Shown: positions 1-51,224 of the stretch, piece after piece
How the letters are laid out: every line of letters begins with the position of its first letter
Position numbering within the stretch: the stretch's first letter is position 1
Assembly: GCA_038496445.1 (NCBI GenBank)
Contig: JALMLS010000052.1
Location: 1 to 64,000 of the forward strand
Length of the DNA stretch: 64,000 bases
Direction of reading: 5' to 3'
DNA from: Trichosphaerium sp. ATCC 40318
Taxonomy: Eukaryota; Protista; Tubulinea
Program-made: the position numbers and the translations under genes
The notes under the pieces: model-generated
The model's input: the letters and a program-made list of their open reading frames with translations, nothing else
The model's database searches: none
Told to the model about the DNA's origin: nothing

Positions 1-4828
<4,828 letters not shown>

Positions 4829-5304
4829 TTGATAGCGAAGAAAAAAAACAGAAAAAAATCAAAAATAAAATTGTGTTAGAATAAAAATAACTGATGTAGC
4901 CCAAACAACATACGCAAACGACCCAGTATTCTCGTACCTAGAAACGAAAACTAATGTTAACAAACGAGGAGTTCTAAATGAACTCACACATTGTGTTTAG
5001 GGTTTGTACTTTAATTATTTCTTGTGTATACCTTACATTGGGATGTTTGGTAGAGTGTCTTGTGGATGAATGTCGATTAATTTGCACGCTTCAGATTTTG
5101 TATTGCATTATTGTGTTTTGGCTAAAAAGCAACACGTTTTGCAAGAGACGTGATTCAAAGAAATGACGGAAATAAGTTTATTCGTTGCTGTTTGAAGAAG
5201 AAGAAGAGGTAGAGCGCTAGCGCCTAGTTTTATCAAAGAACGACTGGAAAGAAGTTGACTTTGTAAACGAGAATTGTGTTTTTTAAATAGAACTGCTGTA
5301 CTCC

Positions 5305-7002
5305 ATGACATCATTACTTCTCCTTGAGACGCTCCCTTTGGAGCTTCAAGCAATAATAATCGACATGGACCCTGAATGTTACATTAAATGGCCTCTGCTT
5401 TGTCGATACACCTCTGCATCACGCTTCGACGATTCGTTTCGTAAATCAGGAGTGGTTAAGAGCTTTTATCCTTCTGGCAATATTTGGAAACGTTTTAACT
5501 TCAAAAACGGTCAGAGACATGGACTGTGCATCATATGGCTCGGTAACAGCATGTACGAGCGTGCGATGTATAAAAAAGGACAAATACATGGAAAGCAGAC
5601 CAGATGGTATACCAATGGTCAGATGCTTTCACAAAGTTCTTACCATAACGGCAAACTCAATGGCGACAGTAAATCATGGACACCTAAAGGAAAAATCAAG
5701 TCTGAAGTGTTGTACGACAACGGAGTTATGATTGAGTCCGTAGAGTGTAACAACGAAGGAAAGGTTATGAGAAGTACGAGAGTGGTAAAAGATAAACGTA
5801 CTGGGAAGAAGAAAGAAAAGTATGTTAACGACACAGTACAGGATAAAGTAACAAAGATTTATTACGATGAACAAGGAAAAGAAAAAAAAAGACAAGAGTT
5901 TGAAAACAAGAATAATACAGTAATTTATGAACGTACACGTGTTGGTGATGATTTATGGCAAATAACTAGGTACCGTAGCCATGGTTTCATGTACGAAAAG
6001 TGTTACGAAAATGGAAAGGGTAAGAGAGAAGGAAAGTTCAAAACTTGGTATGCTAAAAATATTCTGAAAGAACAATATTCGTATGTCAATGGTAGATCAC
6101 AAAACTACATTAAATGGTTTCCAAATGGGAAAATGGCCTTGCGTTGTAACTATTCAGATTGGGGGATACATGGTAAATTTGAAACATGGTATAAAAACGG
6201 TAAACGTGATTGTAAAACTATGTATGTGAACGATGTAAAACGTGGAGAACATAAAAAGTGGTATGAACATACAGGAAGATTACAAGAACACTTCTTCTAT
6301 GTCAATGACTATGAGACTTCTGGTAAACATCGTACATGGTATCAAAATGGACAATTAAGAAGCAGTCATGTACGAACAGACAGTGGATTAGAGGGAGAAG
6401 ATATTAAGTATCATGAAAACGGTGTTTTACGCTCGAAATGTTTTTGGGTTAATGGATTGCAAGTTGGAAGATGTTTTGTTCAATATGAAGATGGTTCTTT
6501 ACAAGAAGAAGTGACGTACAATGAGAAGGGTAGAAAACATGGAGAATATAAAAGATGGAATAAGAATGGTGAACTACATACAAAGGAAAAGTTCAAGGAT
6601 GGAAAATTGTATGGAAAATCAATTACGTGGTTTGATGATGGCACAGTTAACACTGTTAAACGTTATGCTAATGGTAAGCTAAATGGGCTTTTTGAGAGCT
6701 TCCACAGTAACAAAAAGAAAGCAATGGAGATTTTTTATCATAATGGGACACGTGGGCGTGTTATTAGGTGGTACAGTGATGGTACTTTGGAAGAAAAGAC
6801 TTTTAATAATGGAGAATGTGTCAGTACAAGCAAAACAGGATTAACTTATTGTGATGCTTGCGAAGAAGTTGAATGTAAAGAGTTTCATCGAAACGGTGCT
6901 GTCAAGATGGAATGCACTTTTGTTCGAGGTCAAGTGAAAACAGGAAGTATGAGACAGTACAGTGATGACGGATCATTGATCGAGAAACTTGGTTCGGAAT
7001 AA
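5305..7002 (+). CDS. F-box-like N-terminus + MORN-variant (YwqK/MORN_2-like) repeat protein, intronless
   Basis: 565-aa uninterrupted ORF; N-terminal LETLPLELQAIII..WPLLCR resembles an F-box; many repeats of the type G..HG...W(Y/F).NG. Confidence 0.85.
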   Translation: MTSLLLLETLPLELQAIIIDMDPECYIKWPLLCRYTSASRFDDSFRKSGVVKSFYPSGNIWKRFNFKNGQRHGLCIIWLGNSMYERAMYKKGQIHGKQTRWYTNGQMLSQSSYHNGKLNGDSKSWTPKGKIKSEVLYDNGVMIESVECNNEGKVMRSTRVVKDKRTGKKKEKYVNDTVQDKVTKIYYDEQGKEKKRQEFENKNNTVIYERTRVGDDLWQITRYRSHGFMYEKCYENGKGKREGKFKTWYAKNILKEQYSYVNGRSQNYIKWFPNGKMALRCNYSDWGIHGKFETWYKNGKRDCKTMYVNDVKRGEHKKWYEHTGRLQEHFFYVNDYETSGKHRTWYQNGQLRSSHVRTDSGLEGEDIKYHENGVLRSKCFWVNGLQVGRCFVQYEDGSLQEEVTYNEKGRKHGEYKRWNKNGELHTKEKFKDGKLYGKSITWFDDGTVNTVKRYANGKLNGLFESFHSNKKKAMEIFYHNGTRGRVIRWYSDGTLEEKTFNNGECVSTSKTGLTYCDACEEVECKEFHRNGAVKMECTFVRGQVKTGSMRQYSDDGSLIEKLGSE

Positions 7003-7427
7003 GTTAAGTCTTGAAGAAGAAAGCGAAAAACACGAAATTCTCCAACAGAATAAAAAATTTGCTTAAACCCTGTTTCCTATCTTCATGATACCAACACACG
7101 CGTGTAAAATAGTTTTATAACGTCTATCTGTACCAGAACCACTCAGACGCTTATTTTCCTTCCAAACTAACCCTATTGCTGTTTGACGCGCAAGTAAACT
7201 CAAGAGAGCGCCCTGGTAACCTTTCAAAGAAGTTTTGTGAGCTATCGTGATCCAAAGTCTATTTACTTTTCGCAAACGCTTGTGCGTGGTGTATAAGAGT
7301 TTTCCTTCTTTATAGCATACGTTGTTGGTAGAATTTCGCCGTATTTTCATCAACCACTTTTTCGTCAAATTTTTGTTGAAGCACTAGTTTGCTTTGAGGC
7401 ATTAATCTACAATATACAAACAACACA

Positions 7428-10400
7428 ATGAGCTTAAACTTCGCTTCGGAGATAGTCTACGTGCCAGAGGTACTTACTACAACCAAGTTGTGTAGAAACC
7501 TTACCCTTTTGCGTTAGGAAGAGCCTGAAGAAGAGATTTATCAAGGTACGATTGCTCTTAATAGTAGTTGTAACGTTAACACAACGTGTAGATGAAATAG
7601 AAGACGGGTTAGCCGCCTGCGCCCAAGAACAAGCCAAAGTACGTTTAATCTTCGTTGTGTTAACGCTCAAGACTAATACCGTTCAGCTTTGGGCAGAAGC
7701 TGCCGAACAGGGCGAAAGTACCTTTGATAAATCATTTATACAAGAGTTGGTGAGAATGGGTCACGAACAGGCTAAGGTACAAAATCAAACTCATAAACAC
7801 ATCTCTTAAATACACCAAAGGCAAGTGGAAAAGCAGCAGCACAACACAACGACGCGGAGGCATCACATTTGGGTGTTTTTTCATCAGCAAGGCGTCTTCA
7901 GCCAAGATTTCAGGTACACAAATTCTAACGCTGCTCAGCGTACGCTCACAAGTCATTTGTAGAAAGGAAAAGCTTCTACCTACGATGCCCTTGCAAAGAA
8001 ACGTGTTAAGGAAGAACAACAAAGGCGTGTTGAAGCAGAAGCAAAACTACGAGAAAAACGAAGAAAGATGGCTGAAGAAGAAGCAAAAACATTAGCTGCA
8101 TTAAAGAAAAAAGAACAAGAACAAAATAGCTCTACAGGACAAGATGAACTTGCAAAAGTTGCTGCGTACGCTATATAACAAACTCTTATATGGTACTAAC
8201 GCTTTCTTTTGCTTATAGACCTTCTGGACCTTCATCTGCAGCACCAACTTTGTTTCAGTCAAAACCTCAAATCTCCTCATATTTAAATGACGATGATATT
8301 GCAGCTATCGTTATAGATAACTCATCTGGTATGACAAAGGCTGGATGGGCCGGTGATGATGCTCCTCGTGCTGTTTTTCCATCAATTGTTGGACGTCCCA
8401 GACATACAGGTGTTATGGTAAGCTTTGACTGTTCTTTCTTGTTTTTTTCTTTTAGCGAAGACGGTTGTATTGTTTTGTAATAATTAACTTAGGTTGGCAT
8501 GGGTCAAAAAGACTCTTACGTTGGAGATGAAGCACAGTCTAAGAGAGGTATTCTAACAATGAAATACCCAGTAGAACACGGTATAGTCACAAATTGGGAT
8601 GACATGGAAAAAATATGGCATCATACCTTTTACAACGAACTACGTAGTGCTCCAGAGGAACACCCAGTAATATCTACAGAAGCTCCACTCAATCCTACAG
8701 CTAACAGACAAAAAGCCACGCAGGTATGAAAGAATAAGAGGAATAAGGTATTCGTTGTATTAACAGGTTACATTTAGATTATGTTCGAGACTTTTAATGT
8801 TCCAGCATACTACCAACCAATATCTGCTGTTCTTGCACTATATTCAACTGGAAGAACTACTGGCGTAGTGTTAGACTCCGGAGATGGTGTTACACATGCC
8901 GTTCCTGTCTACGTATGTTTTTGTTGGACAATCTTTTTGGGTGTTAATAACGGCTTGTTTTAGGAAGGATTTCCTATTATACATGGTATCAGACGCCTTG
9001 ATATCGCTGGTAGAGATCTTACAGACTACCTAATGAAGATACTTACAGAGCGTGGATACTCATTTACAACGACGGCTGAGAGAGAGATCGTCAGAGATAT
9101 TAAAGGTAAGTCGGGAGATTTTTTCTGTCAATTGTTGTTTTAATCTCTCCTTAGAAAAGTTGTGCTATGTTTCCATAGATTTTGAAGCCGACATGCAAAA
9201 GGCTTCTTCTTGTTCTGCTTTGGAAAAATCGTATGAGTTACCTGACGGCCAAGTCATCACTGTTGGCAACGAGCGTTTCCGTTGCGCAGAAGCAATGTTT
9301 GCAGTACGTAATTTCCCTTTTTTCCCCTACATCTTTCTTCCCGACTAAATGATTTTTTGTAGCCTTCATTTATTGGTTTAGAAGCTGCTGGTGTTAGTGA
9401 TCTTCTTTTTAATTCAATTTATTCCGTAGATGTTGATCTTAGGAAGGTATGATTTGAACAACAAAAAACCTCAATCTTTTTATTTATTCGTTTGTACAGG
9501 ATTTGTTTGGTAATATAGTACTTGCTGGTGGTAATACTATGTTCCCTGGATGTGCAGACAGAGTATCAAACGACCTTACTGCAATGGCTCCACCTACAAC
9601 GAGAGTAAAGGTTATTGCACCACCAGAGAGAAAATACGGTGCTTGGATTGGCGGTTCAATTATTGGTTCTTTGTCAACTTTCGCAAATATGAGTATTACA
9701 AAAGAGCTATATGATGAGTATGGACCAAGTATTATTAACTCAATGTGCCCTTGGGGAACATCGTACGCTTTGATACAATCCGCTATTGTTATCTCCACGT
9801 GTTCTAATAATTTCCAGGTATTCCTCCGGAAGTTGGACTGGTGCTCCTTCTACAAAACCTAAGGTTATTGGACTACCTAAATCACAACAAAAAAAGAAAG
9901 TAGCTGCGAAAAAAGAAGCACAGCCTGAAGTTATTTGGGCAAAGACTCTTATACCACAAGGTACGATTCGTTTTTTGTTTAGGTGCTATTGATTTGCTGA
10001 TTTTGTTTTTCAATAGCTGACAGAGAACCAATCAAGCACGAGCTTAGCACTACGAATATTATTCACGTGCCAATGCAAGCACTTGACAAGACTAAAGGTA
10101 AAGCAGCTGAGGTGACTGGTGAACCTACATACTGTAAAGAATGCCCTGCTATTATGAATCATAGCTCAAACCTTACTAAAGTTGATGACAGTACGTCAAC
10201 ACAAAAAGAAGTTGAAACTTGTTTTTCCTTCTTCTGTACCATCTGTTTAACTTTTTTTCTTAGCAACCTATACCTGGAAGTGTTCATTCTGCGGTACTGA
10301 GAATGAAGTAATGTTAGAAGAAGGCGAAGAGCCAGTTCATCAGACCGTTGAATATGTGTTGAATCCTGCTGTATCTGAAGGAAGCGGAAAGGTTGATAAG

Positions 10401-12007
10401 AATCTTATGGACGAAGCACTTGTTATTTTTTGTGTTGACATCTCAGGCTCTATGACAGTCACTACAAAAGTAGAAGGTGGAGCAAACTTACCAGAAGCTA
10501 TCGCAAGAAAGAGTAAAAACTCAGAATATGTTTCACGCATGCAATGCATCCAAGCAGGTACGCCCCTGAACCATAGCCACAAATAACGAGTTTCTCACTT
10601 TTTTCTAGCTGTACATATTCAACTACAACAAATGAAGTATAAGTTTCCAAACTCAAGACCTGTTCTTATTACTTTTGGTACCCGTATCGCCGTCTATGGA
10701 GATGGTACATCTAAAAAACCAGACTTTATCAATAGAAGAGACTATGCCAAGATAAACACCTTAGTAAAAAGCGTAAGAATATCTTCCTTATTTCTGATCA
10801 TAACGTACTGTATCTTCCTCATACTCTCTTTAGGGAGAAGAATACTTCAAAAATCACAAGCTCAAGCCGGCATCTGAATGCGCTGACCAACTTACCAACG
10901 TAGTTGATCGCATTTCTGAAGAAGGCTCAACTGCCCTTGGCCCAGCTGTATGTTATGCCATTGGTATGGCTTCCTCAAGCCCTGGATCAAAGAGTACGTC
11001 CTTTCTTTGCTTTGTTTATTCTATTTGTGCATTATACTCATATATTTGACTAGTCATGGTATGTACTGATGGTCTTGCCAACTTTGGCGTTGGAGCGATT
11101 GGATCCTCTGAATCGTCAAAGAAAAAGGCTAAAATTGACTATGAGAAAATGGCTGATATCGCCAAATCAAACGGCACTACAGTCAACTTTATTAGTATTC
11201 GCGGTGATGATACTTCTGTTGAAACTGTCGGTGTACTTGCTGATAAGACTGCTGGTGTTGTGGATATTGTAAATCCACTAGATCTCAACCAACAGGTACT
11301 AAATAACTTGAAGAAAGTATTTTATGCTTACCTATTTTTTTCAGGTCGCTAAGATTATGAGTAAACCTGTAATCGCTACTGGTCTTACGTGTACTGTTGT
11401 TAGTCACAAGAGCCTTGAATTTACGGATTCTGGCGAATGTAAATCAGTTAGAGAGTTGGGTAATGTCAACGAAGACACAGATGTTACTTTCTCGTTCAAA
11501 CCAATCGAGTTCTTTAAGGAACCAAAGTCACTTAACTTCCAAGTTCAAGTACGTTCTTTTTTTTTCTACATCTTGCCATCACATTGCTTATTTATCTTTC
11601 TTTAGATTGAATACATTCAACCGAATGGCGCTAAGGTACTACGTGTCGAAACAAGATCGTTACCTGTTACACATGATATCGAAGAAGCTGAGAAGAATAT
11701 CACTGCTTCAGTTGTTGCTATGAAAGCTGTTCAACAATCAGCTGAAATGGCACAGTTTGGAGAATACAAAGAAGCTCGTGTTAATTTGATATCTCATCAA
11801 CGTCTTCTACAACGCGCTATGTTCTCTAAAGCACACCAGAGGCAGTACATTAACTTTATCAAACAAGCTGAGAAGTTAGATGGATTTATGCGTCAAGCAC
11901 AAGTTCAAGAAGAGATTTTAGAGGATGCAGCTGTTGAACAAAAGGATGATTCTGCAGCAAAGAATATTATACAAATGAAATCAGCAAGTCATCGTTTATT
12001 TGTTTAA
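7428..12007 (+). CDS. Actin-domain fusion protein: N-terminal acidic/coiled-coil region + actin + Sec23/24-type zinc finger + vWA (CPRas1-like C-terminal module)
   Basis: Hand splicing gives one continuous frame from ATG 7428 ([14 protein letters not shown]) through actin (about 8287-9747; [18 protein letters not shown]...PPERKY...IINSMC), with no stop in the spliced frame, into CKEC...[22 protein letters not shown] and CTDG; stop at 12005-12007. Confidence 0.85.
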
Positions 12008-12397
12008 ATGAGTACTTTCTACAATCACGTGATAATGTACATTTTGTAAATAAAAACACTTAGCATTAAACCTTCATCTCCAAATAAACTAACTTATTAG
12101 ACAACACTTTCGTTAGTTAACAGTTTGTTGTAATATTTAAGAATCTAGCTAGTTTTCTACAAATGTAATACGACTTGAACCACAGCCTTATATATTTGTA
12201 CACGGTATCAAACTCCGTGGTTTACAAAGATGACGTCATGAGTCCTTGTACCAGCGTTCCAAATAAAGTAATTGTACCTTTCTTGTTTCCTCAGTACTAG
12301 GTGATTTCCTAGGGGTGATTTATAGCGCAATAGCTTTGTTTTGATTAGTTTAAGTACGCCCAACAGTAAAAATCATTACCCGACAACAAACACCGCA

Positions 12398-13672
12398 ATG
12401 AGTACTTTCAAAGCCCATAATAACCCCTAACAACGCGTAGGCCAACCTCCATCTAGACCTAGTGCGCCGTACACAAGACAAGGCTACCCACCAGCTCAAC
12501 AAGGCACCCAACAAACTCACCAAGCGTACCCACAACAAAATTACGGGTATCAACAAAACCCACAGCCAGGTTATCAACAACACCCTCAACAACCTCAATA
12601 CCAACAATACAACGCGCAACCACAACAATCATACCCTCCACAGCAGTATACCGCGCAACCAGGTAATCCACAACCAGGTTATCCTCAGCCAGTGCAACAA
12701 GGCTACCCACAACAAGCACACAATGTGCCAGTACAGCAGGTACGGTATTAAATAAGCCATCTACATTAAACCGTTTTAGGCTCCGCAACAACCAGTACAA
12801 CCACAAAGTCAACCAGCAGCACCAACACAACAACCAAATAGCATGTTTCGCGTAGCAGGGTAAGTACAAGCGTTTGTAATCGCGCCGCTCTTCAATGAAG
12901 TGTTTTTGTTATTCTTAATGTCAAATAGTCAAAAGCCTGCCGCACAACCACAACAAACTGGTCCGAGAGCGTATGATCCAAAAAAAGGGGCTAAACAAGT
13001 ACATGTGACTATCTTAGAAGCTCATTTCAACGAGGTACAATTGACTGATTCTGAAATCAATTAAAAAGCAGACATGTCATGATGGACGTTAGCTCATCAT
13101 TTGTAGAAAATAAAGCCTCCTCATTGTAAATTGACACTTGGCCGTGGCGATCACTGGGGCCATGAACAAAAATCAAGCACGGGTAAGCCAAGATAGCGAC
13201 AAAATTATTTCGGGTTTTTCAGTAACCCGTTAGTTTTAACTTCTTGTTAAAGGTGGTAACAAGGCCGATACTGAATTCAAGTTTAACCAAAGTTTTGTTT
13301 TCACTGTTAAACGTCCAGACAGAGATAGTGTAAGGCTAAGAGTTGTTCATAGAGCTAAAGACGTTCACCTTCAAACTACACAAGTATGCATGGTTTTTGG
13401 GTTGTTTGGTTTTTTGTCACGTGACAATAGTGATTCGTTACTAACTCTATCATTAGCTTGGTCAGGTTGACCTTGTTTTGTCTCAAATGCCACATGAGGA
13501 AGAAACAGATCACTGGTTACCTCTCATGCACTCTATTCGAAAAATTGAAATTGGAAAAATTCACATAAGCGTTGTTGCATTTGGTTTCGGTATTGGCGCA
13601 CCTGCAGAAAAAATTACAAGCGGACTTGAAAAAGCAGCAGGAAAAGTATTATCAATCTTCGGTAAAAAGTAA
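12398..13672 (+). CDS. Pro/Gln/Tyr-rich low-complexity protein with C-terminal C2 domain
   Basis: ATG A|intron|GC CAA CCT gives MSQPPSRPSAPY...; QQGYP/QPGYQ repeats; C2-like VHVTILEAH...FNQSFVFTV...LGQVDL...HWLPL...GKIHISV. Confidence 0.8.
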
Positions 13673-40900: not shown

Positions 40901-42470
40901 GCTATCTGCTTTCTTCCAAATCTACGTACAAAACGTAGACCGTATGGCTCTCACTGCAAATAATCTGTTTGCTGGTAAGTCATAAAAAACAAAAGACTCA
41001 TATTCGCATTGAGAGGTTCTTATGTACACCTAGGTGATAAAATGGCGTTTAGTGTACTAGGTGATGCTAGACAGACTAAAGAGACAATTTTCAGTAATAT
41101 TATGAAGTACTGGAAATACCAGCTTGATGCTTCTGAAAATACTGCTAACAGAACAGACGGTCTATTTCCTGATATTAACATTGAGATTGCTTCGTATGTT
41201 GCTAAAAAGTTGATTTTTTTGATTGAACTATGCTGACTTTTTGGTTTATTTTTAGATCTACTAAAGATACTTTGACTACACGTGTTACAGTCAAGGATAT
41301 GGATATTCCGCTTGAGTTTGAGTCTTACCTTGGTACAATAAGTGCAAGTATAGTGTACGAAGATGTACTGGTCGGTAACATAGTGATGGAAAATCTTGTC
41401 GTAAAGCCAGGTTCGATTTTTTGGGGTTTTTTTTCTGCTCTTTGTTTTGTTTTGACTGTGGTTTAGGAAAGCAAGATTTCTTTGTTACAGCTACCTTAAT
41501 AGCTACAAATGATAGAGATAAACTAGAGAAATTAATAAGCGAGTTCACTTTTGGAAACCTAGTAGATATTCTTTTGAAGTACCTCATTGCATGCAAAAAA
41601 AAATGCTAATTTTTTTGTAGAGTTACAATAAGTGATCTTGATGGTGAGCCTATTAAATTTGATTACATGTTCGAAATACCACAAGAGTCAACTGAAAGCG
41701 ATATCAAATTTATTGAGTGTGCTGAGCTATCTGAAATGAACTGGTGAGTAATTTTTAATTCGTCCTTGATTAGAAAAAAAAAGACAAAGAGCGAATTATT
41801 AACTGAGTTTATCAAAGGTCTCTTTGGGATTTTATACTTAAAAAATGCCAAGTAACAGCTGAAACACATTTATACCTTCATAATCCAATGCCTTTCCCTA
41901 TTGAAGTAACGTATGTCAATTACACAATGCAATTTGATGATAAGGATGGTATGCAACGAAAAAACATTGCGTTCTCTTGTAAAGTTCTAATTCTTTGGCT
42001 TTTAGGTTCTCTCTCGTTTTTCTTAGGTAACTATGAACCTAAAGACGGTATAATTATCGCCCACGTGGAAGAGCCTGGTAATCTAGATCCTCCACCGCTT
42101 CCTATCGAAATTGGAAGTAAGGTTACACGTGCGTGCATTCAAACTGGATAATTTGTTGTAAGCAAGAAGATTAAATTTTTGGTATTTAGAGCTTACAAGG
42201 ATGGCTTTAAACAGTATAGTTAGTAATGAGCTATGTCTTCGATTAAAAGATGAGCGTGATAAAGATCAACTAATCATTGACGTTGAAGGAGGTACCTTAA
42301 TGTCATTCTACAACGCGAACTAAACATTTTTTCAAGGAACCTCTTGTATCAAACTTCAAAAGTTTGAAGCATGCATTGACTTTGTTTTCCGTGACTATGC
42401 AGTAAAGAATGATTCACCTCCATGCATAGAAAAGATAAAGGGGAATTTAGCAGGAAAGCGTAGAGCATAA
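37941..42470 (+). CDS. Type II membrane protein with repeated LEA_2/DUF3712 (Tag1-like) beta-sandwich domains
   Basis: Short Cys-rich cytosolic N-terminus, one TM (VISCIVLT..LIFIAVTIIFVLLL), then repeated beta-rich units with NP-like motifs (NATITNPS, TLLNKFPL, TLHNPMPFPIEVTYVNY); about 20 introns. Confidence 0.6.
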
Positions 42471-42640
42471 AAAACGTGTTATTCGTTGTACAAAAAAGTA
42501 AACAGATTTATTCTAAAAGCCAGAATTTGCACGGTTTTGGCTGTTGGTTTTGATACTCAAATTTTAGCGATGAGTCATCCACAGAAGATAAGCAAATTGA
42601 TAGTATTCACTGTTGTTAAGTATTACGCAACATTGTAAAC

Positions 42641-43962
42641 ATGATTATGGTATTACTAGTTGCGTTCGTTGCAATAGTAATTCTCGGGGTAGTGTTCCTT
42701 GCAATTCTCGTTGCTACAGCTGAATCTGCGTCTGGAGAGCTGCTACCTGCAGAAAGGTTTTATCCTACACTCGATGGAGCTAAAAAACCCTTCCCTGACC
42801 CTTATTCGCCGTGGAGTGCTACAGACGGCGTGTACCTTTCAGTAATCGCACCAGCATACAACGAAGGTAAGCTTGCCCCAAAAACTTCCAAAACGCGCTT
42901 ACACGCCGTTATTTCTTTAAATATAGGCGTACGCATTAATAACTTTATCTTAGAGGAGCGAATACACAGATTTTTTGAGGACACAATGCCCCATCTCGAG
43001 AAACGAGCAAAAGAGGACTCTAGCTTCACCTATGAAGTCATTGTTGTCGATGATGGTAGTAAAGACAACACAGACCAAAAAGTAATGGAACAATGCAAAA
43101 AATATGGCACTGATAAAATAAGATTGCTTAAATTAGTTAAGAATAGAGGAAAAGGTGGCGCTGTGAGACGTGTACGTCAAAGACATAAAAAGCCAAATGA
43201 CATTCCCAAAAAAAATGTTTTGCCGTGAGACGTCCTTTGATGAATGTTTTAGGGATTCAGTTTAGCGCGTGGTAAATATTTATTGTTTGCTGATTCGGAT
43301 GGAGCTACTCTTTTCAGCGACGTAGACCGTTTAGAAAAGAAACTTAAGACAGCAGAGAAAACAGGATATGGTATTGCTGTGGGTTCAAGGAAGCATTTAC
43401 AAGAAGATGCAGAAGCAAACGCAAGCATACAGGCAGAATCTTTGCTTTTTCTTTTTTTTTTGTAGATTGCTTTTTCTCATTTCTTGTAGCGTACAATACT
43501 TCGTAATTGCTTAATGTGGGGTCTACATATTCTATTATACTATGTGGGCGGTATTACAACCATCAATGACACGCAATGTGGGTTTAAGCTATTCACGCGT
43601 AAAGCAGCGCATAAAATATTCCCACAGGTTCATGTCGAACGGTACGTATCATACACGAGCAGACACAGGACTTTAGCACTTGTTTATTTTTTACCATTCT
43701 TTTCTTGGTGAATTTCTTGATTTTTGAAGCTTGAGTGACGTTAATGTTTAGGTGGGCATTTGATATTGAGTTACTCTATCTTGCAGGACACTTTTCAATA
43801 CCTGCAGTTGAAGTTCCTGTTAATTGGGAAGAGATTGAAGGAAGCAAACTCAATCCATTTTTTGCTAGTATTGAGATTGCTAGAGACCTTTTTCGTATTC
43901 GATTTTATTACTTGTTTGGTGTATGGAAGATATTAAAAACAAAACAAGCAAAATCGGATTAG
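42641..43962 (+). CDS. ALG5: Dolichyl-phosphate beta-glucosyltransferase
   Basis: N-terminal TM, LSVIAPAYNE, YEVIVVDDGSKD, NRGKGGAVR, LFADSDGAT, DTQCGFKLFTR, WAFDIELL, VNWEEIEGSK. Confidence 0.95.
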
Positions 43963-44171
43963 AGAAAAAACAACCAAAAAAAAAACATAACAACAGAAAA
44001 AAGTGTAAATAAAAATTATAAATCGGTCCATTTTCTTAGCTGTTGTTAACCCATCCAATACAACCAACCAATCTAGTTTCGAGGTGTCGTTTTGGATTCT
44101 TCTTTAATTTCAGTGAACTCGAGGCTCTAACAAAAGCTGGCGAAAACTTTCAAATTTCTAGCAAGCGATTT

Positions 44172-46284
44172 ATGATGTTGCTGAAGATGACTTCAACTAT
44201 AGTACCACTGCTATGTGGGTATTTGTTTTTTATCGTTTATGCGTACGTAGGTTATACAGAAGTGTAACAGCATAACATTTGAACCCAAAAGGCCGTTTTA
44301 AGATCTAATAAGTTTGTAGAAGCAAGCCTGAGCCTTTTACTATCAATGTACCGGAAAAAACTTTAAACGACCTTTCTAATCGGTAAATAACATTTACGAG
44401 CGTATTCCACTATTAACATGCGCTTCCTAAGGTTAGAAAATACAATTTTTCCGGATTCTCTCGATTTACCAAACGACGACGCATGGTCTCATGGTATCCC
44501 TGTAAAGTAAGGCTTATACTGAATAGAAAGCGAAAGCGGATAAATACATCCGCTTACGTGAAAACAAAAAAAAAGTCAAAAAAGTCAAGTTTGTTTTACT
44601 GAGTATGTAACTGAGTTCTGTAGATCTATGCGTGAATATGTTGATTACTGGAAGAAAGATTATGATTGGAGAGCTCAGGAGAAGTATCTAAATACCTTTG
44701 ATCACTTCAAGATGGACATTGACGGCAAGTGAATATATTGAGAAGAGCTGAGATTGACGTTTTGCCAAAGGCATCAATATTCATTTTGTGCATGCGCTAT
44801 CAAAGGAAAAGGGAGCTGTACCTCTTTTAGTGGTTCACGGGTGGCCAGGATCTTTCTTAGAGTGCTTGAAAGCAATCCCTATACTAACAGGTAACCGAAC
44901 TTGAGTGTATAAAACCCCTAATAAGTAAAATCAAAGACCCTGTTTCTCATGGCAGGAAAGCTTCTGATGCTTTTCATGTTGTTTGTCCGAGTCTCCCAGG
45001 ATATGGGTTCTCAGAACATCCAAAAGAACCAGGTATGTTGTTATTTACTGATAAGTTAGAACATACAAACGTTTTTCTAAAAATAGGTATTAATACAAGA
45101 AAAATTGCAAGTATTTTTGCACAGCTCATGGCAAATCTTAAGTACGATAAATACATGACTCAAGGAGGTGATTGGGGAGGAATTATCACAATGTATGATT
45201 TAGAACCTCTACCTTATTTGCGGAAGAGCTTAAGTCTTTTCTTTAGGCACTTGGCTAATTTGGATACTGAACACGTTTTGGGAACACATCTTAATTTTAT
45301 CCCTCTTAGTCCAGTAGGCTTCTTTGGTAATGTAAAATTCTTGTTGTCCTTCGCATTTCCAAGTTGGTTCTATACACCACAAGAACAGAAATATGTATCA
45401 TACGGTCTATCATATTATTGGCGTACACACTTTTTTTCTCTTTTTTTTCTGATTTTTGACGAAACTGATTGGATCCTAGGTGAGTTTGGATACTTTCATA
45501 TGCAGACTACTAGACCAACTACTCTTGGTTACGGATTAGCGGATTCTCCAGTTGGACTAGGTACACCTAGTCTCGATAGAGTAGTGCTGTCTGACTGAAT
45601 ATTTTTTGTTCGTAGCCGCATGGATTCTTGATAAGTTTCACTTTTGGACTGATACTTCAGATGACATGTCTGTAGTTAAGTATGTATCATTTTTGTGTTT
45701 CGTAGTTTCTTTTCTAAGGCGTTTTAATAGTGTATCAAAAGAAGATATGATAACTAATATAATGATTTATTGGGTTACAAATTCAATCACTTCTTCATCG
45801 CGTCTGTACAAAGAACATTGGCTAGTCTTCAAAGATGGTGCGTTTCTTCATTCCCACAAAATCTTAGTTAAAATATCGTTTAACATTTTGGTCCTTTTGA
45901 CCCTCGCTAAGTGACAGTCAAATAGCCACGTTTGAAAAAAAAAAACAAAGAAAGATTGTTACTAACTTTTTGTCATTAGAAGAAGCACCAATATTAGAGA
46001 CTACACCTATTGGTATATGTCAATTTCATAAAGAGATAATACTTACGGGGAGGATGCTTGCTGACCAACACTTTTATAATATTTTAAGCTTTGATATCAA
46101 AGAGTCTGGTACGTTTTGGTTGACAACCAATGTGGGTTTTTTTGCAACTTTTTTTAACACAGCTGTAGGTGGGCATTTTGCTTTACTTGAAGCTACTGAA
46201 GAATTAGTAGATCATGTAATAGAATTCAAACATAAAATAGAAAAACAACTTGATGATAAAAACAAGGAAAAAGAAGACTTGTAG
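44172..46284 (+). CDS. Microsomal epoxide hydrolase (EPHX1/JHEH family)
   Basis: N-terminal anchor, PFTINVPE, YDWRAQEKYLN, HGWPGSF, PSLPGYGFS, QGGDWG nucleophile elbow, DSPVGLAAWILDKF, GGHFA. Confidence 0.93.
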
Positions 46285-46734
46285 TACAACAACAAGCCAA
46301 GGAATAAACTAGTTTGACTTGGGTTTTTCAAATAATGGTTTAGGTTTTTGTCAATGTGCAAATAAGTAGGACTCCACTAGTTCGCCTTTCCACTAATTTA
46401 ATTATAAAAACTCTCTTTGTACTAAGACGAAGATTGTATTGTACCAAAGCACCAATGGTGTAACATTTCCATTTTGTGTGGAACTGTTAAAGTCGGGTAC
46501 GCTTAAATCGCGCAATGCAAGGTTATACGCTAGGGCATCTTCAGGTGGCGGCATCAGAACTGAATAATCAACGTAATAAAGGGAAAAAGACAACCTGACG
46601 TTTACTGACAATCAAACGGTGTAATACCTGACGAATGTACACTGGCTGTAGTTGGTCTTTCAAAAAGTGTGATTTATTTGCACGTTGTTACAGTGAGTGT
46701 ACAATAAACTCGATACATGTATTATGTTTTTTTG

Positions 46735-48382
46735 TCATCTTTTTTTTTTCTTAATTACTTTATTAAACATTCTGACTATCTTCGATTTATTTTTTATCTC
46801 CCTGTACAACATATGAGAAAAACAGGTTATTATATTGTATAAAATAATTATCATGTGCGAAGGTTGTGTACCTGAGTTGTGGAGGCTGTTGTAGCGCAAT
46901 ACATTGACATTCTCGAACAATTAGTGAAAACAGATTTTGAATATTCTTCCCTGTTTTACAACTCACACTTATGAATGGTATGTCCCATGATTTTGCATAA
47001 GATGCACCTTCTTCATTAGATACTTCTCTTTGTTCTTCAAGATCAATTTTATTGGCAACCTAATCCACAATATTATGAACAACAAAAGTAAGAAAAAAAA
47101 AAGAAATCATACCAAAATCATTGGTGTTGTAGGTTTATCTTTGATGCGTAGTACATGTTCTATGACCAGTGGTATTTCGTCAAAACTGGATTTACTTGAT
47201 ATACTGTATACGAAAACACATATTTCAGTATGGCGCATATAACCATCGCGTAATGCACGATACCTAGAATCAAAGTTACAAAAAAGTTATACAAAAGAAA
47301 GAAAAAACATAAGCGTCTTTGTACTCTTCTTGGCCAGCAGTATCTAGCAAATCCAAATGACTATAAAAATTGCCTCTTTTTAGGCATATACTAATTGCGT
47401 CCTCTAATTACTTTGTGAGCATTCAAGAGGATGTAAATACATAATTCTTCACGTTGTTATTCCCGCCCTTACAAGTACTGTTTTATACGAAATAAAATTC
47501 AAGGTGTTTCTGTGGGGTAAAAAAATAGAGAATTTGAACTGATATTTGATTGATTGATTCCGTATAATACGCAAACGTACCAATAGTTGGATCATATTCA
47601 TCCATGAACCAGTCAGTTATATATTTTACAATTATTGTAGTCTATTCCGCAGGCATATAAGAACACATGCTCGAAAAAAAAACAGAAAAAAAACAGAAAC
47701 ACTAACCACTCCCACGCCGCCTCCTCCAAAAAAGCAGCATTTAGTCTATGAAAAAAAATGTAGTTAGCCACGTGTTTTTTACATATGAAACCAGAGTTTA
47801 CAAAAAGAATTCTACGTACAGTTGGTGCGTTGTCCATCTTTTCGACTTGTGATTTGGAAAGTGATAACTTTGGTATCCTCTTTTTGACGTTTTCTCCGTA
47901 AGAACACCTTGAAATATGGTTTAGATGTATGCTATATCATTCCAACACTTAGACGCAAGTACCCTCTAACTTTGAGAAGAACTGCCTGTGAACAAGCTGT
48001 GAGTTAAGGCGCTTGTTTCGCCGATTCAAAGAAACAAGAAATAAAAAGCTCATAACACTTATTTTACTTTATCGTTGATGGCTATAGTTTTTGTAGTACC
48101 TTGTGCTCCCATTGATAGATAAAATCCTTCATAATGTTATCATCTTGGCCAATTTAATTGTAAATAGCGTTGAACGGTATAAGATGTACCTTTAGGGTCT
48201 GTCATGAAGTGGTAGGCGTAAAGCCGTCGCCATATGATGTTATCAGATGTAAATACCCTAAAAGCCTTCGAAGTAGCGCCAAGAGCTACTATATGTTCCA
48301 ATTCAAGGGTATTACTGATTAACACGAGGATCTCATGAGGAAGCGATACAAAAGCTGATAAACCGGATTCTTTCTTCTCCAT
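46735..48382 (-). CDS. F-box-Ras family GTPase fusion with degenerate P-loop (GGGGVGVT), no CAAX
   Basis: F-box SLPHEILVLISNTL..LGATSKAF..IWRRLY; after splicing: KCCFFGGGGVGVTTIIV, FMDEYDPTIED, LDLLDTAGQEEY, VANKIDL, VSCKTG, polybasic tail KVIKKKKR*. Ras spacing is collinear with canonical Ras. Confidence 0.88.
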
Positions 48383-48480
48383 TACAACGCACTGAGTAGT
48401 GTTTTTATCAAACAATTAAACAACTCACAAACAAGTTGAGTGTGGTCAAGCCCTTTTTCAAACATCTCCAACAAGCTTGG

Positions 48481-48553
48481 CAATCCTCATTGACTGATAG
48501 CCCGGTATATTACCCGCACTATGGAGGTGTTGCCAGTTCTCATCAACGGATTG
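48481..48553 (-). ncRNA. Possible box C/D snoRNA-like k-turn element
   Basis: Minus strand CAATCC-GT-TGATGA...ATGA-GGATTG: 6-bp terminal stem, box C-like and variant box D in k-turn geometry, 73 nt. No guide target recognised. Confidence 0.25.
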
Positions 48554-48798
48554 GTTGCAACTAATTTTATTTAATTTCAAGAATCACTTGCACGTGTTTC
48601 TATCACAAATGTATATATCTGCTCTTGCTCAACACTTTTGTAGGCTATACGCAATGGCAACAAGTTAACTTGTTCTCAACAGTACTCGTGTCCTTACTAT
48701 TTTGACAGCCACTCCAGTTTACAAATTTTCGTAAACAACAAAAAAACCAAAGTGAAAAAATGTACAATGTTTTATTAATAATCCACTTTCTTTAGGTA

Positions 48799-49693
48799 TT
48801 AATAAAACCCAATATTTATCCTACCATCAAATGGCGGTGTTATCTTTAAATGCCTTGGTGTGCTACTCTTAGGCATAATCTTTGTAACAGCATGAAAGAT
48901 CATACGACTAGGACCTCCAAAAATCAATACATCACCAGAACTTAGTGTAACTTGTTTCTCATCATCTTCACGTTTATCCTTATATTTGAATACACAAGAA
49001 GATCCAAGACTGAAAGAAATAATAGGTGACTTAACTGTTTTTTGTTGTTCCTTAGTCAACCCATCTCTATCGCAATGCCATCCTATCTTGCCCTTTCTGG
49101 TATAATAATTTATCCTGCACACTTTAGCTTCTGATGCTGGTATAGAAGGGCATGCTTTACGAGCAATATTCAAGTATTTTGTATTCGCTTCTGAAAACTC
49201 TTTTGGTACGTCATTCATTGGTATAGACATACGCGCTTTGGTCTTTAAGTTCAATTGCTTGTTTTTCCTTGGTCTTGTGGACTGAGACTGAGGAGCAGCT
49301 GAGGTGTTTGGTTTTTTCACAGAGTATGTGTTTGCGCTAAGATCCGTGTCTGCAAAACCTGTAGCGAGTTAGAAATATCCATTGAAGCGTATTTTGATGT
49401 GTTTTACGTACCTTCCGCTGTCATAATGAACTTGCCGGTGTAAAAAGAGCCGTAAGCTGGGTGTTTACCCTGTCCATACGCTACGCTTATGTTCATAAGC
49501 TTTTGTTGCTCTTGAGGGCTTACAATATTTTTTAATAATACCAAACCATCCTAATTATACCCTCATTAGCGTAACAAGTACTAAGAGGGTATGTAATATC
49601 GAGAATACGTACTTGTAAGACAATTGTCTCCGGTTCAACGTGAGTGGTACGTTTAGCCTTTGGAACGTATGCGAAACCTGTGTTTGAGCTCAT
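48799..49693 (-). CDS. AlkB-family 2OG-Fe(II) dioxygenase (AlkB/ALKBH1-like)
   Basis: DGLVLLKNIVSPQEQ, INYY, IGWHCD (HxD), IISFSLG, GDVLIFGGPSRMIFHAV, RINIGF; 2 introns. Confidence 0.9.
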
Positions 49694-50473
49694 GATGCTA
49701 TTCTATTGTTTAATTGTTTATTTTGAGGTAAATTGTGTGTTCGTCAATGTAAACCAAAGATGGTTCACTGAACTGAAACCAATTTACCACGTCACTGCTC
49801 TGAAGACGACGTGGCGTCACTCCCCGTATAAATTATCAACCCCAGCTACTTTTTGTTTCTGTTGTCAACAATCTCGGAATTTACTAAGAAGCTTGTGTAG
49901 CACAAAGCAGAAACGTTTCAAGACCCTGACTTAATTATAGAATATAATTCATTATTGCGACCATTGAGCTTAATTTTACCTCCGTGTGGTGAAGCCTTTT
50001 CAATAGTAGTACATTAACCAAGGCAAGCATTTACCTTTCAGCTTTGCCGATAGGGATGCAGTTCAATTTACGTAAGATTGTACGGATAAATCTGAAAACC
50101 ATGCATTGTTGAAAGCACCTTCGTAGCTTCTAACCGACTACACCCGTTGTGTAAGGTTTATAGTATGGAAAGTGTTGCTAAGGATTGCAAAGTTCCTCAG
50201 GAACTATGAATGAACTGTGATCAGAGGGTCGGAGAAACGGGTGGCTTCCATTCAGTGACTTAAACTCATTGATTGGAAGAACTCAGAATGTTCAGTGAAA
50301 ACGTGTCGCGTTGTTATGTTAAAATTATCAAAAATTGCATACTAGTACTTTGCCATAAACCTATGTGACACTACAGAACTGCACCCGATTAGTAATATTA
50401 ACTAGTTAAGACTGTACCATAAAGACACAAAAACAAAAAGACAAAAAAAAAACACAAACAAAAATCAACTCAA

Positions 50474-51224
50474 ATGACACTCACGCTTACAGCTTATGAA
50501 CAACCGGATACCAACGTACAAAAGCTCACTGATCTTCTAGAATGTGGATTTATCACTCGCGCTGAGTTTGAAGATCGCTTAGGTACGCTTTATTAGTGAG
50601 TTTATTTCGCTACCACAAAGCTAACACAAAATAATAGGCACCGCATCACGCGATACTACAACTGAACCTTCCAATTATTCTTCTTTCACCCCAGAACCTC
50701 CTTTGTATGTATACGAGGAGCCAAGTGTATACTTCACCCCAAATTGTTCGTCAAACTACCAGCAGAGCTATGAGGAACAGGGATACGAGGAGCAGACTAA
50801 TGAGGAGGAAAAGCGAAGTGTCGCAATAGAGTCAGATTGCGAAGATGACACGACTGGATTTACTCTTGTATCTTATTCCAAAACTCCAAGAGAATCTACA
50901 GTACCTGTTGCAGAAACATACGAGCCTATTGATGAGCAAGAATCTGATGGCGACGATGAAATGGCAGAGATGTACGAAGAGGCGAATGTCGCTTTTCACA
51001 CAGCTGTGTTATATAGAAGAGACGACAAAGAAGGTAAAACCAAATCTGCAAACTTTTTTTTTAACTTTCTTGTAGCTACTTTTACTCGTAATTATATCTC
51101 TCGCAAACATGCGTACAAACCATGGACTGACTTTGATTATTTGACTCCTAAATCTGTTCGCCGTCGTGAATACACTCATATTCGCGGATCTGTTGAGGCA
51201 GTCTTGGAAAAGCTTGGGTATTGA
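50474..51224 (+). CDS. Hypothetical acidic protein with N-terminal SHOCT-like motif
   Basis: KLTDLLECGFITRAEFEDRL matches the SHOCT pattern; acidic low-complexity middle; introns at about 50583 and 51033. Confidence 0.6.

Follow-up and report, generated by a model that had tools for sequence, protein, structure and literature searches.

An actin domain continues into a Sec23/24-like zinc-finger and vWA tail in a single gene of Trichosphaerium sp. ATCC 40318

Introduction

Actin is, to our knowledge, almost never found as a domain within a larger protein. The first 64,000 nucleotides (nt) of contig JALMLS010000052.1 of the tubulinean protist Trichosphaerium sp. ATCC 40318 (assembly GCA_038496445.1; hereafter the window) contain a coding region at positions 7428-12007 in which actin exons are followed by exons for a zinc finger and a von Willebrand factor A (vWA) domain of the kind found in Dictyostelium circularly permuted Ras protein 1 (CPRas1). 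This locus raises two questions: whether actin and tail belong to one gene, and what an actin domain might do in such a protein. Here, we report that the fused gene is real, that its tail is a homologue of Sec23/24 and that similar proteins occur in distant protists, and we weigh the possible functions of the actin domain.

Results

Actin and tail are encoded by one spliced gene

Three-frame translation of positions 7000-12500 revealed one gene on the plus strand, comprising 21 exons and 20 phase-consistent introns of 44 to 75 nt, all of which begin with GT and end with AG (Table 1). The coding sequence of 3,489 nt specifies a protein of 1,162 amino acids (aa) and 127.7 kDa; upstream of its start codon at 7428 there is an in-frame stop, and the start itself lines up with the N-terminal ends of relatives. 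The actin part, which ends in ...[11 protein letters not shown], has no free ...RKCF end and reads on through ...NSMCPWGTS into approximately 600 further residues. The last actin exon, exon 13, stops at 9762 in phase 2, and the reading frame resumes at 9818 with exon 14.

Intron-free contigs over positions 7300-12100 were found in four public runs from three studies and tile the transcript from 7400 to 12065. The runs carry the label 'RNA?'; since all 20 introns are removed in the contigs, the contigs come from spliced RNA. One contig of 2,412 nt (X1 record 3) extends from actin exon 10 or 11 to 12065, and another of 1,946 nt (X4 record 9) matches the window with 0 differences and spans every junction from 9762/9818 onward. 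Both junctions for which the original prediction had asked for transcript support, 9762/9818 and 9960/10017, are thus bridged by these two contigs, and the former is additionally spanned by a contig of 207 nt (X3 record 8). The remaining introns were seen in contigs as joints or loose ends. This evidence is compatible with a minor form that retains intron 13, in which translation would stop 32 codons past the junction; the frame of this form is not kept in the paralogue described below, whereas the spliced frame is.

A second copy of the gene resides on another contig of the same genome (C13) and retains all 20 intron positions as well as the fused frame. Its product of 1,160 aa is 87% identical to the window protein, with exons 68 to 96% identical and introns that are essentially unalignable. 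The synonymous divergence (dS) between the two copies is 0.64 throughout, and the ratio of nonsynonymous to synonymous divergence (dN/dS) is 0.12 overall, 0.14 in the N-terminus, 0.18 in the actin domain, 0.36 in the linker exon 14 and 0.036 in the tail. Exon 14 contains no ATG in either copy and is conserved in the fused frame only. Furthermore, in another genome, actin, zinc finger and trunk are encoded together on a 2-Mb contig as a single intronless open reading frame (ORF) of 1,118 aa (P0042).

Collectively, the RNA contigs, the paralogue and P0042 bear out the claim that the actin domain continues into the tail as one transcribed gene. The fused gene and protein exist, with hardly any room for doubt, and we consider the gene and its fusion as good as proven. 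That two neighbouring genes were wrongly joined, or that the assembly is at fault, a reading whose sole support is the weakness of the tail's exon-wise Pfam matches, is next to impossible given the spliced contigs over the junction in three studies, the in-frame conservation of the ATG-less exon 14, the second copy on another contig and the intronless ORF of the same architecture.

The tail is a Sec23/24 homologue with a complete set of MIDAS residues

Pfam searches with single tail exons yielded weak, sub-threshold matches to zf-Sec23_Sec24 and Sec23_trunk, while homologues of the tail exceed the Pfam cut-off for zf-Sec23_Sec24 and also match Sec23_BS. A profile built from 34 aligned tails, among them those of the Ras-bearing proteins P0132, P0136, P0169 and P0171, matched human Sec24A (E value of 1.6 × 10−15, positions 23-467 of 543), with other Sec24 and Sec23 chains next. 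The closest full tail, residues 150-688 of P0002, which is about 50% identical to that of the window protein, was modelled by AlphaFold2 with a predicted local distance difference test (pLDDT) score of 91.3 and a predicted template modelling (pTM) score of 0.88. When this model was compared with the Protein Data Bank (PDB) by Foldseek, the top 46 matches were all Sec23/24 structures (E values of 1 × 10−23 to 4 × 10−16, TM score of about 0.6, 560 to 630 aligned columns). The order of the four domains, namely, zinc finger, trunk, beta-sandwich and helical domain, as tested on the family profile and P0002, is that of the Sec23/24 superfamily. A gelsolin-like C-terminal domain was represented by no Gelsolin match in any Pfam scan, and the protein ends after the helical domain. 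These results indicate that the tail is a true Sec23/24 homologue.

The vWA domain of the tail carries a predicted metal ion-dependent adhesion site (MIDAS), as judged from its residues: the complete D-x-S-x-S/Thr/Asp set of five is present in the window protein and invariant in the 34 tails, in which the cysteines of the finger are nearly invariant. Sec24A keeps this site only partly in the profile alignment. The paired CxxC motifs and the complete MIDAS that had been noticed in the sequence could therefore be located and found to be conserved, and the assignment of the tail to the CPRas1-type module was upheld by its alignment with Ras-bearing proteins over more than 500 aa.

Two observations from structure resources touch on this fold. 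A search of the ESM Atlas with the tail returned scores of 0.78 or less and no actin-bearing cluster among the matches; the nearest clusters include VWFA proteins of Asgard archaea (Promethearchaeota, Thorarchaeota) with Sec23_trunk and Sec23_BS, and at scores below 0.8 we treat them as a lead only. In addition, PDB entry 9ya0 lists Sec23/Sec24 chains in the pre-conoidal ring P2 of Toxoplasma, a solved Sec23/24 fold in a cytoskeletal apical structure.

Actin-tail proteins form a widespread eukaryotic family

A search with exon 21 alone retrieved 387 proteins at an E value of ≤1 × 10−3 among 1.84 billion representatives. The tail is preceded by actin in at least 24 cluster representatives, consisting of 22 long matches that were scanned and two proteins with precomputed Pfam assignments (P0166 and P0168), and by a Ras domain in place of actin in P0132, P0136, P0169 and P0171. 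Members of the family carry various accessory domains, including U-box (P0050 and P0094), WWE (P0062 and P0167), Deltex C-terminal (P0164 and P0165) and WW domains, a C-terminal profilin in P0162 and a RING domain in the Ras version P0136. The named sources are Paulinella chromatophora (P0016), Paulinella micropora (P0160) and Scrippsiella acuminata (P0173, from the cluster of P0166), and the other members are transcriptome or metagenome records. Publicly, members are annotated as 'actin-related protein', 'actin beta/gamma 1' or 'hypothetical'. A length-limited word search found 16 proteins.

Text searches of the literature, whose coverage left out most subscription journals, turned up no account of actin fused to a vWA or Sec23-like module. 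The actin-tail architecture thus constitutes a widespread eukaryotic family for which we found no prior description. Of the two points that together would have told against the original prediction, that the architecture is common proved true, dozens of cluster representatives sharing it; no paper characterising the actin-tail fusion was found.

Within the Trichosphaerium genome the tail occurs five times. It is fused to actin on C162 and C13. On C6 at 374000-384000 (L009, minus strand) the same zinc-finger/vWA tail follows a circularly permuted Ras, in which the G3-G4 exons precede the G2 region, and at about 590-600 kb of the same contig the tail stands behind an acidic N-terminus only. The fifth copy, on C16 at 272000-282000 (L007, minus strand), is a deeply diverged paralogue with an actin-type C-terminal block upstream. 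The match of these upstream exons is weak (Pfam Actin at 19 bits on one piece only, tblastn cover of 38%), and this locus may represent a third, much older actin fusion. Conversely, a fused-type actin with the same N-terminal flank but no tail was found on C68 at 41000-51000 (L010, minus strand). This copy, which ends in ...CPWGNS, has a damaged first phosphate loop and lacks a short stretch before ERKY, and it is probably in decay.

In a tree of the tails, those of circularly permuted Ras (cpRas) proteins formed one clade with a Shimodaira-Hasegawa-like approximate likelihood ratio test (SH-aLRT) value of 95, and the actin tails fell into two groups, the tree being unrooted and many of its rows being fragments without a known N-terminus. 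A single origin of the actin-tail fusion is compatible with this tree, which cannot show it.

The fused actins keep the pointed face while the nucleotide site decays

The Pfam Actin profile (PF00022) matched exons 7, 8, 9, 10, 11 and 13 individually and in the order of the profile, over profile positions 2-409 and with a best E value of 3 × 10−29. The actin domain shares 76% identity with the conventional actin of the host (C40), against which the individual faces were also compared. All 36 residues of the pointed face are identical between the two (identity of 1.00), as are the DNase I-binding loop (D-loop), which is encoded across intron 7, and the tip of subdomain 4, while identity amounts to 0.81 at the nucleotide site and 0.53 on the barbed face. 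At the nucleotide site, Gly13 of the first phosphate loop (DNSSG) and Gln137 are both replaced by Ser; the second phosphate loop (DSGDGVTH) is intact and His161 is kept. The C13 paralogue has lost both Gln137 and His161, and the window copy has lost only Gln137 of the two. On the barbed face, the W-loop and C-terminal residues are changed, Phe375 being replaced and the chain extended beyond it, and the core of the groove is kept (Y143, G146, T148, L349, F352 and M355).

This pattern recurs across the family. In 17 fused actins, the pointed face reached an identity of 0.86, compared with 0.60 on the barbed face, 0.45 at the nucleotide site, 0.64 on the lateral surfaces and 0.63 in the rest. In contrast, 12 divergent actins that are encoded as free proteins in the same genome, with a similar overall divergence, gave values of 0.37, 0.57, 0.66, 0.51 and 0.59, respectively. 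The pointed face was better conserved than the nucleotide site in all 17 fused actins, and the reverse was true for 11 of the 12 free ones. Gln137 is kept in just one fused actin, and both phosphate loops are missing in the Paulinella members. Columns that are invariant across the fused family are concentrated in the D-loop/subdomain 2, [13 protein letters not shown] and YELPDGQ (subdomains 2 and 4).

The actin family of this genome is very large and diverse: at least 60 actin-like loci were found, ranging from conventional ones to some that are 27 to 50% identical over the last exon.

A conserved module and a helical segment precede the actin domain

All fused members share an N-terminal module of approximately 100 aa, composed of an amphipathic helix (E-E-I-Y-x-D-E...W-A) followed by R-L-Q-P-R-F-Q-K-G...Y-D. 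Both motifs are present in the window protein, and R-x-Q-P-R together with the following D is invariant across the fused family. The module matched no Pfam family. The N-terminal extension described in the original prediction is therefore present, although it spans about 200 rather than about 170 aa and is not just acidic sequence but includes a conserved module.

The charged segment encoded by exon 6 was approached through the homologue P0161. AlphaFold2 modelled the corresponding helices with pLDDT scores of 82 to 92 from a 15-row alignment, and in a complex test of these helices against P0161's own actin domain the score was 0.72, with 0.00 for the best of three controls. A score this high was obtained for 51 of 78 solved complexes and for 2 of 108 mismatched pairs (39 of 65 and 2 of 126, respectively, for eukaryotes); contact agreement in the runs was at least 21% and partner pLDDT at least 39. 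The predicted contacts lie at residues 223-231, 252-272, 274-292 and 319-325 (actin numbering), that is, in subdomains 3/4 including the hydrophobic plug. These models support binding of the P0161 helices to actin subdomains 3/4, and we infer that the segment encoded by exon 6 of the window gene may behave likewise.

Layout of the locus

The features of the gene are listed in Table 1. Directly upstream of it lies an uninterrupted ORF of MORN-type repeats with YxNGxxxG motifs. In the actin-fusion gene (7470-11605), 14 of the 20 donor sites read GTAC, 10 of them GTACG, instead of the usual GTAAG or GTATG. A GTACGC donor is also found in the conventional actin gene (L011), and the GTAC donors look like a lineage-specific splice-site preference.

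Table 1. Coordinates of the actin-fusion gene, its domains and motifs, and the neighbouring ORF in the window
Feature	Position	Strand	Basis or remark
Exons 1-7	7428-7469, 7518-7545, 7592-7638, 7687-7776, 7821-7913, 7963-8165, 8219-8417	+
Exons 8-14	8493-8723, 8778-8912, 8964-9105, 9155-9303, 9363-9446, 9500-9762, 9818-9960	+
Exons 15-21	10017-10190, 10264-10557, 10609-10772, 10834-10993, 11054-11295, 11345-11548, 11606-12007	+	stop codon at 12005-12007
N-terminal module, exons 1-5	7428-7913	+	aligns across the fused family
Motif EEIYQDEIEDG...	7530-7608	+	N-terminal module
Motif RRLQPRFQ	7890-7913	+	N-terminal module
Exon 6, charged helical segment between N-terminal module and actin	7963-8165	+	models of homologue P0161
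Actin domain, aa ~199-566, exons 7-13	8310-9754	+	Pfam Actin, exon by exon
First phosphate loop DNSSG	8310-8339	+	Gly13 replaced by Ser
D-loop, across intron 7	8403-8513	+	identical to host actin
Codon for residue 137	8823-8825	+	Gln137 replaced by Ser
Second phosphate loop DSGDGVTH	8874-8897	+	intact
Adenine loop	9527-9550	+
Intron 13, 55 nt, GTACGC..CCAG	9763-9817	+	joint 9762/9818 in X1, X4 and X3 contigs
Exon 14, flexible linker, without in-frame ATG	9818-9960	+	fused frame kept in C13 paralogue
Sec23/24-type zinc finger, split by intron 15	10130-10295	+	CxxC at 10130-10147 and CxxC at 10278-10295
Trunk/vWA domain with complete predicted MIDAS	10320-11274	+	profile match to Sec24A, fold search
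Predicted MIDAS, D-x-S-x-S	10434-10454	+	invariant in 34 tails
Predicted MIDAS, Thr	10924-10944	+	invariant in 34 tails
Predicted MIDAS, Asp	11062-11082	+	invariant in 34 tails
Sec23/24-type beta-sandwich	11284-11626	+	Pfam Sec23_BS in homologues, model secondary structure, Foldseek; boundaries carried over from homologue P0002
C-terminal helical domain with conserved end motif	11639-12004	+	helices in model; exon 21 relatives
MORN-type repeat ORF, 565 aa	5305-7002	+	YxNGxxxG motifs

Discussion

What could an actin domain do in front of a Sec23/24-like tail? The face by which actin seats on a barbed end is kept in the fused actins while the ATPase site decays, and the domain therefore looks like a docking module rather than a switch; the Sec24-like build of the tail and its MIDAS, in turn, suggest a ligand-binding adaptor. 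From these sequence patterns we tentatively favour, at somewhat less than even confidence, the explanation that the actin domain serves to dock the protein on actin and bears a ligand-binding adaptor, rather than working mainly as an ATP-driven switch. The conserved pointed-end face, comprising the D-loop and subdomains 2 and 4, would bind the barbed face of conventional actin, with the fused protein either sitting at the barbed ends of filaments or being incorporated as a subunit. In this picture, the Sec24-like tail would be suspended from the C-terminus of the actin domain and might bind a partner through the metal site of its MIDAS and its Sec24-like surfaces. The helices in front of the actin domain may pack against subdomains 3/4 of the same chain, thereby limiting further polymer contacts. 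Given the U-box, WWE, Deltex C-terminal, WW and profilin domains of relatives, the cargo may lie in ubiquitin/ADP-ribose signalling or in the handling of actin monomers.

We also consider, as a doubtful possibility, that in this widespread class of proteins an ATPase-dead actin domain would direct the chain to filament barbed ends like an inbuilt address, delivering there the Sec24-like, MIDAS-bearing adaptor in the window protein and U-box, WWE, Deltex C-terminal or profilin modules in its relatives. If this were true, actin itself would have been recruited as an actin-binding domain.

Several points weigh against the docking explanation. Most nucleotide-binding residues are kept in the window copy (0.81), which may thus bind ATP, and its conserved barbed-groove core leaves either capping or co-polymerisation open to it. 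One subgroup of the family has a near-canonical barbed face (0.73 to 0.96). The sets of face residues were taken from general structural knowledge of F-actin and are approximate, and the 17 fused sequences are mutually related and not independent samples. Finally, the fold and complex predictions concern homologues that are 37 to 50% identical in the tail and not the window protein, and the partner's own fold is uncertain in the complex test.

An alternative, which we regard as improbable, is that actin replaces the permuted Ras as a nucleotide switch in cis and gates the Sec23-like tail of the same chain, similar to the way in which Sar1-GTP engages Sec23. Actin indeed holds the cpRas position before the same tail, Sec23 is a GTPase effector as well as a GTPase-activating protein, and the window copy has retained [13 protein letters not shown], the adenine loop and the above-mentioned identity at the nucleotide site. 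However, no class of residues is less conserved across the family than that of the nucleotide site; 16 of 17 members have lost Gln137, neither phosphate loop is present in those from Paulinella, and the tail has no gelsolin domain, the bearer of the arginine finger in Sec23. Moreover, such a switch would not account for the strictness with which the D-loop and subdomain 4 are conserved. The original prediction had proposed that the module was coupled to a different nucleotide-binding switch. The coupling stands, as actin does occupy the cpRas position, but the switch is weakened by the decay of the nucleotide site (0.45) and by the retention of Gln137 in a single fused actin.

Less probable still is that the protein acts as a membrane or cargo adaptor like those of coat protein complex II (COPII), with the tail binding membranes or sorting motifs in the manner of Sec24 and linking vesicles or membranes to filaments. 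Homology to Sec24/Sec23 over four domains would fit such a role, which is also compatible with the actin-docking explanation. Nevertheless, a complete MIDAS is not found in Sec23/24 as aligned with the family profile, the gelsolin domain is absent and the accessory domains of relatives point to ubiquitin/ADP-ribose signalling and profilin, not to trafficking.

The actin-tail family spans distant protist lineages, including Rhizaria, a dinoflagellate, the present genome and many environmental sequences. Its unusual pattern of a conserved pointed face and a decaying ATPase site, read as docking, provides a direct, testable hypothesis for how cargo could be addressed to actin. The family also extends the account of proteins that combine cpRAS with vWA (cpRAS-VWA), with the same Sec23/24-like core joined to two different nucleotide-binding folds, a combination that bears on the role of the ancestral Sec23/24 core before COPII.

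Among known systems, the cpRAS-VWA proteins of the Dictyostelium CPRas1 type share with the window protein the four-Cys zinc finger, the vWA/Sec23 trunk and the parts beyond, at approximately 28 to 32% identity over more than 500 aa between the window tail and Ras-bearing members. The window protein differs in having actin in place of the permuted Ras and in its family-specific N-terminal module. The 2008 paper on cpRAS by Elias and Novotny (PMC2430557) describes the conserved C-terminal half and tail-only relatives, but no actin version. Sec24/Sec23 of the COPII inner coat contain the zinc finger, trunk, beta-sandwich and helical domains in the same order; unlike them, the window protein has a complete MIDAS (partial in Sec24A), actin in front and no gelsolin-like domain, and a COPII role is not implied. 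The ArnA/ArnB proteins of Sulfolobus (PDB 8s05, 'archaeal ortholog of the Sec23/24 core motif') likewise have a core of vWA and zinc finger, with a fold match at an E value of about 4 × 10−13 that ranked below every Sec23/24 match, but they are much smaller, consist of two chains and contain no actin.

On the actin side, the window protein resembles conventional actin and actin-related proteins in its complete actin fold, and it differs from conventional actin in its much faster evolution (dN/dS of 0.18), the Ser residues at positions 13 and 137, and the replacement of Phe375 with some 600 aa added. Filactin of Dictyostelium is likewise a natural multidomain protein with an actin domain and is otherwise unrelated to the window protein. 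Its actin is C-terminal, behind filamin-like repeats, and it is not known to have a Sec23/24-like core. The free divergent actins, finally, display a pattern of conservation opposite to that of the fused ones.

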